A DNA stretch of 64,000 bases from Piromyces finnis finn. Its lineage: Eukaryota; Fungi; Neocallimastigomycota. The notes beneath the pieces are model-generated. The model searched no databases. It saw nothing but the letters and a program-made list of their open reading frames with translations, and was not told the DNA's origin. The position numbers and the translations under genes are program-made. The stretch's first letter is position 1, and every line of letters starts with the position of its first letter. This document shows, in pieces, positions 43,369 to 56,530 of this stretch. Location: NCBI GenBank assembly GCA_002104945.1, contig MCFH01000041.1:186001-250000 (forward strand). Reading direction: 5' to 3'.

Positions 43369-44334
43369 TTTCGTAATAAATATTATGATGATAATAAATT
43401 TATTGAAACTAAAGATTTTATTAAATTATGTTATGAATACCCAGAGTTTGCCTATGGCTTCTACTGGCTATTGAAAGCAAGAAGCGGATACAAGTTGGAT
43501 GCTAGAGTTGCCAAAGCTGCCAAATTTGTTGATCCAGTTTGTCCTAACTACTGTCCATGTTGCAAGTGTGGAGATCAAAGTATTAAACATTGGTTATTAG
43601 ATTGTCCAACATTTAGAGATATCCGTATTAAACATTATGATTCCATAGTCCAGCTATTAAATTTTTTCAGTCAACGTAATTCCAATAGTCCTATCAATAA
43701 TAATGAAATTGATAATATCAGTAGAGATAGTAATAACATTAATAGTAATAGTAACAATAGTAGTAATAACAATAGTAATAGTAACAATAGTAATAGTAAC
43801 AATAGTAATAATAACAATAGTAGTAATAGAAATAGTAATAATAACAATAGTAATAATAACAATAATAGAAATAATAATATTAGTAATGATAGCAATAGTG
43901 AAGATAATAATTCTAATTTAGATAGTAATTTAGTTAATGATAGTAATAGTTCTAATAATCCGGTGAATATTAATGTGTATGATTATTCTAGTGTGTGCAG
44001 TAAAATATTTAAATTCCTTCTTGGGGGAAGAAGTTTTAACAATATTAATTACGATTCAAGGGAATGGAAAGAACTTTGTAAGCGTCAGATTCAATCTGGT
44101 ACTAACGAAGGAACACCATTCTTGACGGTAACCGCGGAACTTCTAACCAAAATCATGCCTTTTGCTATTGGCCAGCAATGGTCAATGTTCAAAAGGTTTG
44201 AAGCAACATCCAAGAGCGTCAATGCTGAAGAAACAGTAAGACAGGCCAGGAGGGCCAGCGCAACCAATGGAGATCATAATTTTGTTCCATGACAAAATTT
44301 TGATCTTTGGCTCGGTGTCCCATTGGAAGTCAAA
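43369..44334 (+). mobile_element. 5'-truncated non-LTR (LINE-like) retrotransposon 3' end with CCHC zinc knuckle
   Basis: GC-richer island. The frame is open from about 43312 to TGA at 44292 and lacks RT. It encodes FYWLLKARSGY, CPCCKCGDQSIKHWLLDCPTFRDIR (C-x2-C...H-x4-C, typical of LINE ORF2 ends) and FLLGGR. Putative end at GGAAGTCAAA (44325-44334). Clade and TSD not resolved. Confidence 0.75.
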
Positions 44335-45584
44335 TACAATTATTATACTTTAGTATGATAGTGGCTTTCTTACTTTAATTAAAATTACTAGAATACATTA
44401 TACCCAATTTTTATTCATTTGTATTTATTTAAACATATTTTTTTATTTTTATTTTATTTTAATTTTTATATTACATGTATTATAATTTTAATTAAATTAA
44501 TAATAAAGTTTAAAATATTTGATGCCGTTAAAAAAAAAAAAAAAAAATTTCGTAATAAACATTCTTTATGAAAGAATTTTAAACTTCAATTATTAACCTT
44601 TAATAGTAAAATATATATATAATATTTATATTACAAGAAAATTAGTAGTAATTAATCTTGTGACATCCGGCGGAACACAAATAATATAAATAATTGGAAA
44701 ATAATAGAAAATATATATACTTACCATATTGAATAATAGAATTTTTATTTATAGGTTTCTCTCTAATTAGTTATTTTTGGATAAATTAAAAATGGTTATT
44801 TCATTAAAAAAAATATTAAAAATTATTAAATATGTTAATATTATTTGTATAATATGTTAATTTTTCCCTCTTGTATTTGAATGTCATTAATAGAAAAAAT
44901 AATTTTATTTTATAATAATATGTAATATAATTATTAAATATTTAATTATTTTTTAATCTATTTTCTATTAACCTACTTTACTTATATGGTCATAATGAAA
45001 AATAAAAATGATACAACCAACCAACCAACCAACCGTACTATTTGTAATGAATATATATATAATAAACTATTAAATAAGATTAATAAAATATAATTTAAAT
45101 AATTTATTATTTAATTTTTAAACTTTTATATTTATTAATGTTTCTTCTTTTTTTTAAAATATAAAAAGTTTTCCGCAATACATTAACCCATAAATCAGTA
45201 ATTTGTCAAAAAAAGAAATTAAAAAAAAACTTTTATAAATTTTAAATGAATGATGATTTAATTTTAATATATTCAACAGATAGTTTTAGAGGTGTCATTT
45301 ACTCCTGAATTTATTATTATTTTATAATATATATATATTAAATGGAGAAAAAAATGTATAAAAGGTAACAGTTTTTATCTTTCTTCAACTTTTTATTGTT
45401 TCATAAATTGTATATATCCAAAAAAAAAAAGGGCTATTTGAAAAATATAAATATTTTTTTAAATAAAAAATATTTTTTATTAAACTTAAAACTTAAATAA
45501 TATAATACCTATATATAAAAAGAAGAAAAGTATTAAATAAAAGATACATACAGTTCCTAAGTTTTATAATCATTAAAGAAGAAA

Positions 45585-45812
45585 ATGCCTATAATTATTG
45601 AAAGTATTTCATCAAAGGATTTATTAAAGAGTAAGAGACGTGTTACTTTTAATAACTCTATAACTACCATTGTTGCTCATGATAATGAAGTTTATGATAG
45701 AACAAGTATTTATGTTAGACCATTAAAATATAATGACATTGTTGAATTAAATATGTTCATACAAGAAATGAAACATGAATATTTAAGACTCCATAGCAAA
45801 GAAAAGGTTTAA
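45585..45812 (+). CDS. 75-aa protein resembling the PP1-binding C-terminal module of Bni4/Phactr proteins
   Basis: RVxF motif KRRVTF followed by the pattern YDR...L...I.ELN.F..EM. In-frame stop at 45567 upstream. Confidence 0.6.
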   Translation: MPIIIESISSKDLLKSKRRVTFNNSITTIVAHDNEVYDRTSIYVRPLKYNDIVELNMFIQEMKHEYLRLHSKEKV

Positions 45813-46935
45813 TAAATTTATTTGTTAAACACCTTTAGAAAATGCTAAATGTAAGAAAAGGCTGAAGAATTACTTTCCTCTACCTATAATGATTATACCA
45901 CAATATACATATCTATCTATATATTAATTCTGTAAATACTATAATTTTATTAAAATTAAAGTGTTTTTATTTTTATTATTAAGAAAAATGTAAAAGATGC
46001 ATTAATTATTATTATGATTATTGTATCAATAATGAAATACTATAAATTTTATTTTAATAAAAGTACATAATAAATTATTAATAAGAAATATTTATTAAAA
46101 TTGAAATATTTGGTTGTTAATTTTTTTTTTATATTATTAAATGAAATAAAAAAATATATTGTTATTTTAATAATTGGTTAAAATGCTTTAAAAAATCATA
46201 GGAATGTTTTATATAATTATTAAAAGTATTGTATATTTAGTTTTTATATCGTTTTGGGTGTTACCCAAGTTATGGTATAAGCTTTTTTTAAAAAAAAAAA
46301 AAAAGTAATTATTAATATTTCACGTGATCAATTTAAATTATTAATAATTGATTGTATTGCCAATTCCTTTTACCACCATAAAAATCAATTTTTGGTTATT
46401 TTGGAGGTTCTTTAATTCTATTTAATATTTATGTGGCTTGTATTTTTTAAATATAGTACAAATAATCTTGATTTATTAAATAAATGATTCTAAACCATGG
46501 CTTTTAGATATAACTTCATAATTCATTATTTATTTTAATCAAAGAACTAACCATCTAAAATTAATTTTAATTCTGTATACTTTTATGAAATTATAAAGAC
46601 ACTTTTTAAGCATTCATTTCTCTTTTTTTTTTTTTTTTAAAAAAAAAAAATTAATAAAAACTTATATCACACAAATAATAATTTATATTATAGTTATATT
46701 TTTTATAATAACCTATGCTGAAATAAAATAAAATTTAAAAAGGCTTTTTTAAAAAAATATATATAATTAAAGAAATACTAATTACAAAAAAAAAAAAAAA
46801 AAAAAAAAAAAAAAAAAAAACAGACTCAAAAATAATAAATATAAGCATTAATATATTATATATATATATATATAAAATACACAACCTCTTGTAAATAATT
46901 CATTTAATATACTTATAATAAAATAATAATAGAGT

Positions 46936-54552: not shown

Positions 54553-55134
54553 TTATACTAAATTATAGAAACAAAGAGCTATACCAAACATTTGCACATA
54601 ATCAACCCATGGGGATACTTCAATATAAAAATCAAAATCTGTATCCTTCATAATACCAAAAGAACATATTAAAGTTTCATTTTCACAATCTCTGTTACAA
54701 TAAACGGAATATTTAGTTTTGGTTTCATTAAATAATATGGTTAATACTTCATGCTGATTTGTAATTTTATTAAAAAAAAACATTTCATATTTTTTTAATT
54801 CGATTGAATTAAAAAATTTAATAAAGGAGAGTATTTCATTTCTGTCTTCCCCGGAATATATGAAATATTTCATGGAGTTTTGGATAAAGGTATTAATAAT
54901 AGGAAAATTCAGATTATCATATACAATAATTCCTCTATATATAAATCCACAATTATATAATTCTTCTCCTTCACTATTCAAAATAATAACAGAATTATTT
55001 GAATAATTACTACAACTCACTCTTAAATAAAATACATCATGTCTTTTTGAAATATAATTAAAATCAACATTGGATATTAGGTGATCTGGAATACTAATTT
55101 CTTTGTTATATTCAATTAACTCGTTATTAGACAT
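54553..55134 (-). CDS. 193-aa intronless protein, probable tubby-C/LURP-one-like fold
   Basis: Open ORF with beta-rich pattern and C-terminal FYIEVSPWVDYVQMFGIALCF helix motif. Family assignment is from recalled pattern only. Confidence 0.5.
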   Translation of the reverse strand: MSNNELIEYNKEISIPDHLISNVDFNYISKRHDVFYLRVSCSNYSNNSVIILNSEGEELYNCGFIYRGIIVYDNLNFPIINTFIQNSMKYFIYSGEDRNEILSFIKFFNSIELKKYEMFFFNKITNQHEVLTILFNETKTKYSVYCNRDCENETLICSFGIMKDTDFDFYIEVSPWVDYVQMFGIALCFYNLV

Positions 55135-55989
55135 AATATTACATATTTATTTAAAATACTTTATATAATTTTATTATTAGATTTACATAAAAATTATATC
55201 AATAGTTTGATTTCATATATTTAAATAGAAAAAAACATCAATATTTATATTTTTTTTAATTAATAAAAGTATATTTAAGAGAACATTCTTTTTTTTTTTT
55301 TTTTTTTTTTTAATTTTTACTATATTATACACATAATATATTCTTTTTAAATATTAAAAAGTAACATAAAATTAAATTTTATTTAAAAAGTTTAATGTTT
55401 ATTTAATAAACATAATAAATATATAAGGATATTAATATTTTTAATATATTTTTAGGCAGTGGATTAAACTTTAATTTATATTTATTATGTTTAAATAGTT
55501 AAATAATAAAAAAAAAATCAAACTGCCTTTTTTAAAAAGATAATAATTATATATAATATGTATAATATTTTATTTAAAAAAAAAGGGTAAAAACTACTTT
55601 AAATGTTTTTTTTTTTTTTTTAATTCATAAATATATACCATACCTTTAAGAATTAAAATATTTAAAAAAAAAAAAAATTTCATTTAAAAACTTTAGTGGA
55701 TGATTTAAATTTTTTTTGTACTACATAATTTAAAAAAAAAAAAAAAAATTACTGCCTATATATTAATTATTAAATTAAAACTAAAGCTTGGGAAAACTTG
55801 AAATAATTTAAAAATATAACTTTTATACCTTTAATCTTATATACTTTTATAGCATTAAACTTAATGGAAATTATTTTTATTTAAATAAATGCATTTAAAA
55901 CCTATTAAATATTCACTTTAAAATAAAATGACGTATAACTAGGAATGAGTTTTAATTGAATATTTCATTTAGGAAGTATAATTTTGTTA

Positions 55990-56530
55990 TTTTTTTTTTA
56001 ACTTCCGAGTGCATTTCTCCCATCGATCAGAGTTAGCTCCAATGGTGGTTCTTAGAGAAACGTTGGCTCATTCCTATTGCTAGGTGGTTGTGACCCTCCT
56101 GGTCTGTCATACTGTTTCTTCATCTTCGACGCTCACTTAATCCATGTACATTAGATGCATGTCGTTGTACGATATTTCACAACTACAATGCTAAGCCTCT
56201 TATAGTCAATTTGATCACGTGTCAACCGCCCCCTAATGTTTACACTTAAATTGATTAAGGAATATTATGTGTTTTTGGTATAGCCTAAGTCACCACTTAT
56301 TAAGTTCTAATTTGGAATGTACCATGTACACTAGACCCTCTCAGGCCGGCTAGACGAGTGTTATTATCATAGTAGTAAATTAGAAAGTTCATTTATACTT
56401 ACCTGAATATCATAGCCCAACCCAGTGGGAAAATCCACAGGCACTGACATCTGCGGGGTCGAACCAGAAGCCTTATGTATGCTAAGGAAACGCCTTAACA
56501 ACCAGGATAAAAACTGGAACGACTCCTGTT
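55990..56530 (-). mobile_element. Candidate tRNA-Ala-derived SINE (pol III head, body, LINE-related 3' segment, A tail)
   Basis: GC-rich island with no ORF. Minus strand has a D-arm/A-box CCTGGTTGTTAAGG, anticodon loop TTAGCAT, B-box GGTTCGACCCC, a 44-nt segment matching the LINE at 44214-44257 (38/44), and ends GGAAGTT plus an A run. Confidence 0.78.
56445..56516 (-). pseudogene. Degenerate tRNA-Ala(AGC)-like sequence forming the SINE head
   Basis: D-stem CCT/AGG, loop TT-AGC-AT and T-loop TTCGACC are recognisable. The acceptor and anticodon stems no longer pair. Confidence 0.7.

Follow-up and report, generated by a model that had tools for sequence, protein, structure and literature searches.

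A SINE and a LINE of the anaerobic fungus Piromyces finnis share a candidate two-hairpin RNA module

Introduction

Two segments of a 64,000-nt stretch of the Piromyces finnis genome (Neocallimastigomycota; assembly GCA_002104945.1, contig MCFH01000041.1, positions 186,001 to 250,000; hereafter the window, with positions counted from its first nucleotide) raise the question of whether a short non-coding retroposon of this fungus is mobilised by the protein of a longer one. The first segment (44214–44257, plus strand) belongs to a long interspersed nuclear element (LINE) and the second (56091–56134, read as its reverse complement) to a short interspersed nuclear element (SINE); the two are identical at 38 of 44 positions without a gap. 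An earlier note on this DNA had pointed out the match and had taken it as part of a 3' terminus common to the LINE and to a tRNA-derived SINE. The match itself was reproduced in our analysis and, when one 3-nt gap is admitted, it stretches to 44 of 53 positions (E = 5e-11 in the pairwise search space and still about 1e-6 when rescaled to a self-comparison of the 64 kb). The similarity between the two segments is non-random, and the window holds a real SINE/LINE partner pair, with one copy of each element and two independent retroposon insertions. Taken together, the observations described below are probably best explained by a LINE/SINE pair in which the two partners are connected through a short RNA module. 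The reading of the locus as a pair of SINE and LINE partners is thus right in substance, while the position assigned to the LINE end and the tRNA origin assigned to the SINE head need correction.

Results

A young, multi-copy SINE

The genome assembly (56,455,805 bp in 232 contigs) was searched for copies of both elements. With window positions 55990–56530 as a query, 402 candidates were retrieved for the shorter element, and all 40 of those that were scored were about 97% identical. The anatomy of the element was deduced from 30 fetched copies, namely the window copy and 29 others. These have one common 5' end (AGTCGTTCC...) and a 3' end reading GGAAGTT, which is followed by 10–130 A, and 25 of the 30 are bordered by target site duplications (TSDs), one of 7 bp and the remainder of 10–17 bp. 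Exact patterns representing the head and the 3' end occur 210 and 296 times in the genome, respectively, and are spread over many contigs. The family is present in about 300 copies, roughly 30% of which are 5'-truncated, since the 3' ends outnumber the heads. Such truncation is expected of target-primed reverse transcription, the hallmarks of which (variable A tail, TSDs, 5' truncations) are all displayed by the element. Genome searching therefore confirmed that the 56-kb element is, as had been supposed, a multi-copy SINE with common 5' and 3' ends, A tails and TSDs.

The family consensus is 536 bp long and the 29 copies from outside the window are 100% identical to each other. Three substitutions and a deletion of 11 nt set the window copy apart from the consensus, and a clear TSD is lacking (at most 5 nt, TAACA); the copy is therefore somewhat older than the rest of the family. 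One of the six differences between the two matching segments, a C-to-A change, is private to this copy. The consensus, identical in the 29 fetched copies, undoes the change and raises the identity to the LINE segment to 39 of 44 positions. No open reading frame (ORF) of 60 aa or more was listed for the SINE by the ORF-finding program, and no AATAAA is present in it; the latter signal does occur in the LINE, and its absence from the SINE fits an A-tail whose template is the source copy. What lies at 56 kb is a real poly(A) SINE, non-coding, multi-copy and very young. A stretch of the SINE that resembles an intron (GTAAGT ... CTAAT ... TAG) was considered as such and rejected, as the predicted spliced junction was found in no genomic copy.

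An abundant L1-like LINE

A search of the genome seeded with window positions 43400–44400 resulted in 1547 LINE candidates. All 29 other copies that were fetched are co-linear with the window copy over 43379–44529, at 95–99% identity, and then run into poly(A); they also extend 5' of position 43379, where the window copy ends. Since the window copy stops at this position and is flanked on both sides by TTTCGTAATA, while the others continue upstream, it represents a 5'-truncated insertion. The full-length element is 5581 bp long and has an 11-bp TSD; across four truncated copies and one full-length copy, the TSDs measure 10–13 bp. Both the length of the TSDs and the type of tail are alike in SINE and LINE.

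Two full-length copies (L062 and L064) encode an Exo_endo_phos (APE) endonuclease and a reverse transcriptase (RT; RVT_1 domain) and display a weak match to zf-RVT. The shared segment is present in all full-length copies, and the 44-kb element does represent, as had been proposed, the 3' portion of a LINE that encodes an RT. When compared with solved structures, the RT is closest to human L1 ORF2p (E = 8e-30), followed by R2 (1.6e-13), in a database (PDB) without the RTs of Tad1, I and Jockey. Judging from its APE endonuclease, RT, C-terminal Cys/His motif and poly(A) tail, the LINE is L1-like. The 766-nt leader contains no sense-strand ORF of 50 aa or more that might represent ORF1, and the element consists of a single ORF of about 1512 aa, not of the two ORFs by which the L1 clade is recognised.

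In a six-frame protein search of the genome, the frame of ∼1512 aa proved to be uninterrupted in at least 40 LINE copies (98–99% identity), which makes an active partner plausible. The family is highly abundant and probably still active; the window copy itself is dead. Relatives of the C-terminal 601 aa of the ORF were found, at 31–62% identity, in Neocallimastix lanati, Anaeromyces robustus, Piromyces sp. E2, Orpinomyces and metagenomes, and the C-terminus of the ORF is conserved among the LINEs of other anaerobic fungi. A LINE fragment with 80% identity (L054) was considered as a possible second lineage and discarded: it is a single old copy, and all its other matches are to the main family at about 80%.

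Several irregular copies were encountered. In the full-length copy L062 (3982–4140) the first 78 nt are tandemly duplicated and, near position 7718, ∼310 bp are deleted internally relative to L061, L063 and L064. In L053 (2653–2690), two successive LINE copies are separated by a 36-nt fragment of the module region, which follows the poly(A) of the first and directly precedes the exact 5' end of the second; this fragment could be a nested insertion or a product of template switching.

Position of the shared segment

When the SINE is compared with the whole LINE, strong similarity is confined to 53 nt (85% identity, E = 5e-12), i.e. 53 of the 536 nt of the SINE are LINE-like. On the LINE the shared segment corresponds to positions 5263–5306, within the final 16 ORF codons and 275 nt away from the 3' end of the element, whereas in the SINE it lies 90 nt from the poly(A). 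A distance of 75–90 nt, attributed previously to both segments, is thus correct for the SINE and not for the LINE. On the 3' side of the segment the two elements are not significantly alike, the best local alignment being equalled by 21 of 500 shuffles; a longer shared tail was rejected on this ground. The extreme 3' ends have in common only GTT plus poly(A). Consequently, the segment is not part of a common 3' terminus.

The earlier note had also stated that both ends read GGAAGT(C/T)AAA. The SINE does end in GGAAGTT followed by A10, but the LINE counterpart, GGAAGTCAAA, is internal (44325–44334) and was rejected as the LINE 3' end, given that the 29 other copies remain co-linear as far as 44529 and only then enter poly(A). 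A genome-wide pattern search for the LINE module followed by GGAAGTY plus at least 7 A gave no matches. In five LINE lineages, that of Neocallimastix lanati included, GAAGTCAAA and then ACAATTATT are found 45–67 nt after the module, and the last unique bases of the SINE (TCGGAAGTT) can be aligned to this conserved LINE motif. GGAAGTCAAA is, therefore, a conserved motif of the LINE 3' untranslated region (UTR) rather than the terminus of the LINE, and the SINE may have been built from the 'module ... motif' portion of a LINE RNA.

A further stretch of identity, 16 of 16 positions (TGATATTCAGGTAAGT; E = 0.003), is common to the SINE body and the LINE leader. It is located at window positions 56397–56412 (minus strand) and at about 4214–4229 of L064 (LINE leader 223–238), respectively. 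In both elements the stretch resembles an exon/intron junction and is followed by AT-rich, intron-like sequence.

A conserved two-hairpin module

The minimum free energy fold of the LINE module has a stability of -14.3 kcal/mol (z = -2.2). RNAalifold, when applied to five LINE lineages, recovered a closing stem plus two hairpins unaided and predicted, in addition, a third hairpin, the outer stem of which displays compensatory changes in lineage L067. The DNA of seven relatives from other anaerobic fungi and metagenomes was inspected, and the module is present in all seven; a metagenome scan for the module gave no matches.

The module was aligned in nine rows, i.e. eight LINE lineages and the SINE. 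The stem of hairpin 1 (GCUG/CAGU) is invariant over the nine rows and its 6-nt loop takes five forms. In hairpin 2, 100% of the cells are paired and the middle base of the loop varies; two independent double changes have occurred in it, one from G-C to A-U in the SINE and the other from the neighbouring C-G to A-U in L067, besides three G-U wobbles. By pair counting, 94.9% of the positions are paired, as opposed to 24–36% when the partners are slid, and the covariation score was reached by 4 of 500 shuffles. With its stems invariant, compensatory or wobble-tolerant and its loops variable, the module is conserved at the RNA level in the LINEs of other anaerobic fungi. A module variant with AUUG/CAAU in hairpin 1, found in L053, was not counted as covariation: it is unique in the genome, belongs to a nested insertion cluster and is explained by three transitions in an old copy.

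Proposed recognition by the LINE protein and its alternatives

The strongest alternative to recognition of the module is a relaxed system of the Alu/L1 kind, in which poly(A) is all that the LINE protein requires of an RNA, the module of the SINE is a relic of its assembly (e.g. by template switching onto LINE RNA), and the LINE conserves the module for the sake of its C-terminal peptide, of translation termination with cis-preference, or of RNA stability. Such a system would be in keeping with the long poly(A) that ends both elements and with the L1-like RT, as well as with the non-terminal position of the module, the difference between the remaining tails and the strong conservation of the module-encoded peptide over the lineages. 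The manner in which the module is conserved, however, points the other way. Mean pairwise differences at codon positions 1, 2 and 3 among the eight LINEs are 0.05, 0.06 and 0.18 in the module versus 0.28, 0.23 and 0.37 upstream and 0.31, 0.26 and 0.38 downstream, so that all three positions are 2–5 times less variable than in the flanks. At four-fold third positions the corresponding values are 0.000 for the module (5 codons) and 0.185 for the upstream stretch (6 codons). The four-fold sites of the stems are thus frozen, whereas the sites of the LINE module that do vary are loop positions, where the changes alter the amino acid. The SINE argues in the same direction. When its module is translated in the LINE frame a stop codon is encountered, and selection on the peptide cannot therefore explain why its consensus retains both hairpins, complete with the compensatory A-U pair; moreover, the module is the sole LINE-like piece in the 536-nt element. 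We consequently regard a system relying on poly(A) alone as unlikely and lean towards the hairpin module as the handle for recognition.

The SINE might instead be driven by another LINE family of P. finnis, its likeness to the window LINE being then due to common ancestry of the modules. The module of the SINE does differ from the window LINE family at 5 of 44 positions, and the sequences sampled covered only about 0.3 Mb of the genome. Nevertheless, the letter G in the loop of hairpin 2 (column 37 of the alignment) is found only in the P. finnis LINE family and in the SINE, and both loop sequences of the SINE are matched, among the eight LINE lineages, by this family alone. A genome-wide pattern search for other variants of hairpin 1 with these loops gave only 17 singleton mutants. 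The window LINE family also has its numerous open-frame copies and TSD sizes as in the SINE. A different driver is accordingly most improbable, and the sequence comparisons make it very likely that the P. finnis LINE family described here mobilises the SINE.

The reading of the 56-kb element as the remnant of a decayed LINE beside a tRNA pseudogene, for which a 50-nt similarity and nothing further could be adduced, has next to no probability, being refuted by the copy structure (about 300 dispersed copies with the same 5' and 3' ends and TSDs), by a LINE resemblance limited to 53 of 536 nt and by the lack of a tRNA detectable with ARAGORN or Rfam. The SINE is therefore neither single-copy nor homologous to a LINE over its whole length, two of the outcomes that the earlier note had named as fatal to its reading.

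The SINE head and its origin

The head of the SINE contains a perfect B-box consensus of RNA polymerase III (Pol III), GGTTCGANNCC, which is the sole occurrence in the window and is matched in none of 100 shuffles. This perfect B box, the single indication of its kind, suggests that the head is of Pol III origin. Its descent from a tRNA, as claimed previously, is unproven. ARAGORN reported no tRNA in the head at the default (100%), 90% and 80% thresholds; at 70% it called one 'tRNA-Leu' there, yet also made two spurious calls on the opposite strand. Rfam listed no tRNA in the SINE at E values up to 10, although these count all 4227 families, so that this negative is not very strong. No tRNA genes were found within the 0.33 Mb of genome sequence examined.

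A second repeat family, with about 19 genomic copies, agrees with the SINE over the head as far as the B box and diverges from it thereafter; the head is a module in its own right. Examples are found at C13:497481-497514, C46:259487-259520 and C167:402742-402775; the sequence after the B box is roughly 70%-similar. A metagenome scan with the SINE head gave three matches, two of which were rejected as chance 20–22-mers in GC-rich contigs. The third, L074 (metagenome contig Ga0138317_1043819, minus strand 1090–1294), is a true relative of the SINE head with 75% identity over 158 nt, and the copies of the second family are the best genomic matches to it. One head hairpin of L074 is kept via GG/CC to CC/GG changes, as judged by eye. 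The head of L074 is preceded, at a distance of about 14 nt, by a complete gene for 5S rRNA, the sequence of which matches the P. finnis 5S genes at 100% identity. A 5S-linked source gene of the head was considered and rejected, because the 5S genes of P. finnis do not run on into head-like sequence; insertion of a related SINE beside a 5S gene is the better reading of L074.

Features of the window

The coordinates of the two elements and of their parts are collected in Table 1. Several other features were recorded in the window. A C/D-box small nucleolar RNA (42616–42694, plus strand) precedes the LINE insertion by about 700 nt and scores 62.4 bits against Rfam snR56 and 48.4 bits against snR61, both above the gathering scores. 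The repeat output for the window is dominated by a pair of (ATT)n / (AAT)n microsatellites of ∼250 nt each (9250–9500 and 33560–33810), which lie 24 kb apart and form an inverted pair with 94–98% complementarity. A 1432-aa ORF (57130–61428, minus strand), about 600 nt from the SINE head, displays, by eye, a myosin-type P-loop (GESGAGKT) and IQ-like repeats.

Table 1. Coordinates of the LINE and SINE copies and of their component features in the window.
Feature	Position	Strand	Basis or remark
LINE TSD, 5' copy, TTTCGTAATA	43369-43378	+	Identical 10-mer at 44548-44557
5'-truncated LINE copy	43379-44529	+	Positions 4422-5581 of the 5581-bp full-length element
C-terminal remnant of LINE ORF, stop TGA at 44290-44292	43471-44292	+	ORF list
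Cys/His zinc-knuckle-like motif in LINE ORF remnant	43540-43605	+	Read from the ORF; weak zf-RVT match here in full-length copies
LINE two-hairpin module, overlapping the last 16 ORF codons	44214-44263	+	Predicted by fold, RNAalifold and pair counts
LINE module closing stem	44216-44219 with 44258-44261	+	Predicted fold
LINE hairpin 1	44223-44238	+	Predicted fold
LINE hairpin 2	44244-44256	+	Predicted fold
Third predicted hairpin, AU-rich, across the stop codon	44272-44305	+	RNAalifold, five LINE lineages
GGAAGTCAAA motif, LINE 3' UTR, internal	44325-44334	+	67 nt after the shared segment
AATAAA polyadenylation signal of LINE	44502-44507	+	22 nt 5' of the last unique base
LINE poly(A) tail, A18	44530-44547	+	13-43 A in other copies
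LINE TSD, 3' copy, TTTCGTAATA	44548-44557	+	Directly after the poly(A)
SINE copy	55990-56524	-	525 unique nt plus A10; matches to genomic copies
SINE 3' terminus, GGAAGTT (56006-56000) plus A10	55990-56006	-	Read directly
SINE copy of the two-hairpin module	56085-56134	-	Hairpin 1 weakened by private C-to-A change; closing stem absent
SINE head, about 80 nt	56445-56524	-	B box 56455-56465, T5 run 56509-56513

Discussion

Several observations weigh against a hairpin module that is recognised by the LINE protein and against a SINE transcribed by Pol III, and these have to be set beside the evidence in favour. The module is not terminal, being removed from the poly(A) by 90 nt in the SINE and by 275 nt in the LINE, which sets it apart from the 3' tails shared in classical pairs, and the remainder of the SINE tail has no significant similarity to the LINE. 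Two parts of the LINE structure, namely the closing stem and the third hairpin, are also missing from the SINE. Covariation was assessed on a small sample (nine sequences with two independent double changes), synonymous diversity upstream of the module is itself low (0.19) and the contrast is between 5 and 6 codons. Furthermore, the peptide encoded by the module is strongly conserved too, so that selection at the protein level contributes to the conservation. As for the head, no A box was recognised in it by eye, the T5 run at head positions 12–16 could terminate Pol III, and the more stringent ARAGORN searches recognised no tRNA.

Assuming that the module is nonetheless the handle, the SINE would be mobilised as follows. 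Its RNA would probably be made by Pol III from the B-box-bearing head, with the A-tail templated by the genomic copy, and the LINE protein, presented with the two hairpins and poly(A), would reverse-transcribe it at AT-rich nicks through target-primed reverse transcription. The mode of recognition would then be intermediate between the 'stringent' one and one that depends on poly(A) only.

The SINE is not a new kind of element, and its twist lies in a shared handle that resides in the coding end of the LINE and not at the terminus. Alu and B1, which depend on mammalian L1, represent the relaxed type, and Alu has no sequence in common with L1. The pair described here resembles them in the poly(A) SINE, the TSDs of 10–17 bp, the L1-like RT and an A-tail that would be templated by the source copy; it differs from them in that a LINE-derived, structured module is shared and in that the LINE consists of one ORF only, without an ORF1. 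In the eel element UnaL2, of the L2 clade and partner in the stringent pair that has been proven experimentally, TGTAA repeats are found at the end, the stem-loop is located in the terminal 3' UTR, and its function has been proven by assay; in P. finnis, poly(A) takes the place of the repeats and we infer the function from comparison. The two systems are nevertheless alike in that a stem-loop of the LINE RNA is conserved and has been copied by the SINE (UnaSINE1 in the eel), where it is thought to be recognised by the RT (PMC3747384).

Closer parallels are provided by maize ZmSINE2/3 with LINE1-1 and by Chlamydomonas SINEX-3_CR with L1-1_CR, which are pairs of the stringent type with poly(A) and with partners from the L1 clade (PMC3747384). 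In these, as in P. finnis, an L1-like poly(A) LINE is accompanied by a SINE that has a short LINE stem-loop with compensatory changes and is otherwise unrelated to it. The piece shared in the plant and algal pairs is, however, the 3'-terminal ∼80 nt of the UTR, whereas here it overlaps the last ORF codons, at a considerable distance from the LINE end; the host, moreover, is an early-diverging fungus and the extreme ends of its two elements have only GTT plus poly(A) in common. SINEs with internal parts derived from LINE bodies have been reported from animals (PMC5786205) and are comparable to the P. finnis SINE in having a LINE piece from off the extreme 3' end.

The earlier note had known of no fungal SINEs from this lineage, and full-text literature searches for SINEs in Neocallimastigomycota or anaerobic fungi likewise found none. 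In other fungi, SINE/LINE pairs are known, such as Mg-SINE with MgL/MGR583 in Magnaporthe and SINE2-1_BG with Tad1-24_BG in Blumeria (PMC3747384, Table 1), and the AfuSINEs are SINEs of Aspergillus fumigatus (PMC5063351). Like the P. finnis element, if the latter is indeed a product of Pol III, the known fungal SINEs are short Pol III-type retroposons with LINE-related tails. They differ from it in belonging to ascomycetes, in their clear tRNA- or 5S-related heads and in their partners of the Tad1 type; the P. finnis SINE comes from Neocallimastigomycota, has a head without such an assignment and is paired with an L1-like LINE.

A tentative proposal, which goes beyond the pairing itself and to which we would give somewhat less than even weight, concerns the LINE. 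The module at its coding end may serve the newly completed LINE protein as a handle for capturing its own template (cis-preference), perhaps together with the hairpin across the stop codon and with GGAAGTCAAA. This arrangement would be conserved throughout Neocallimastigomycota, and the SINE would parasitise the LINE by means of a minimal set of two hairpins plus poly(A). If true, an L1-like LINE would have its recognition element within a coding region and would follow a hybrid mode of 'structured handle plus poly(A)'.

The fungi from which SINEs have been described are few, and the anaerobic gut fungi are studied for their biomass-degrading enzymes. Dozens of identical SINE copies and at least 40 open-frame LINE copies imply that retrotransposition is ongoing in P. 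finnis, and such activity can disrupt genes, confuse gene models and supply strain markers. The pair offers a compact natural test case for the choice of template by an L1-like RT, with a candidate signal of ∼50 nt, located in the coding end, and with naturally occurring compensatory variants. A defined handle of this kind could, in principle, also serve retrotransposition-based genetic tools for fungi that now lack them.

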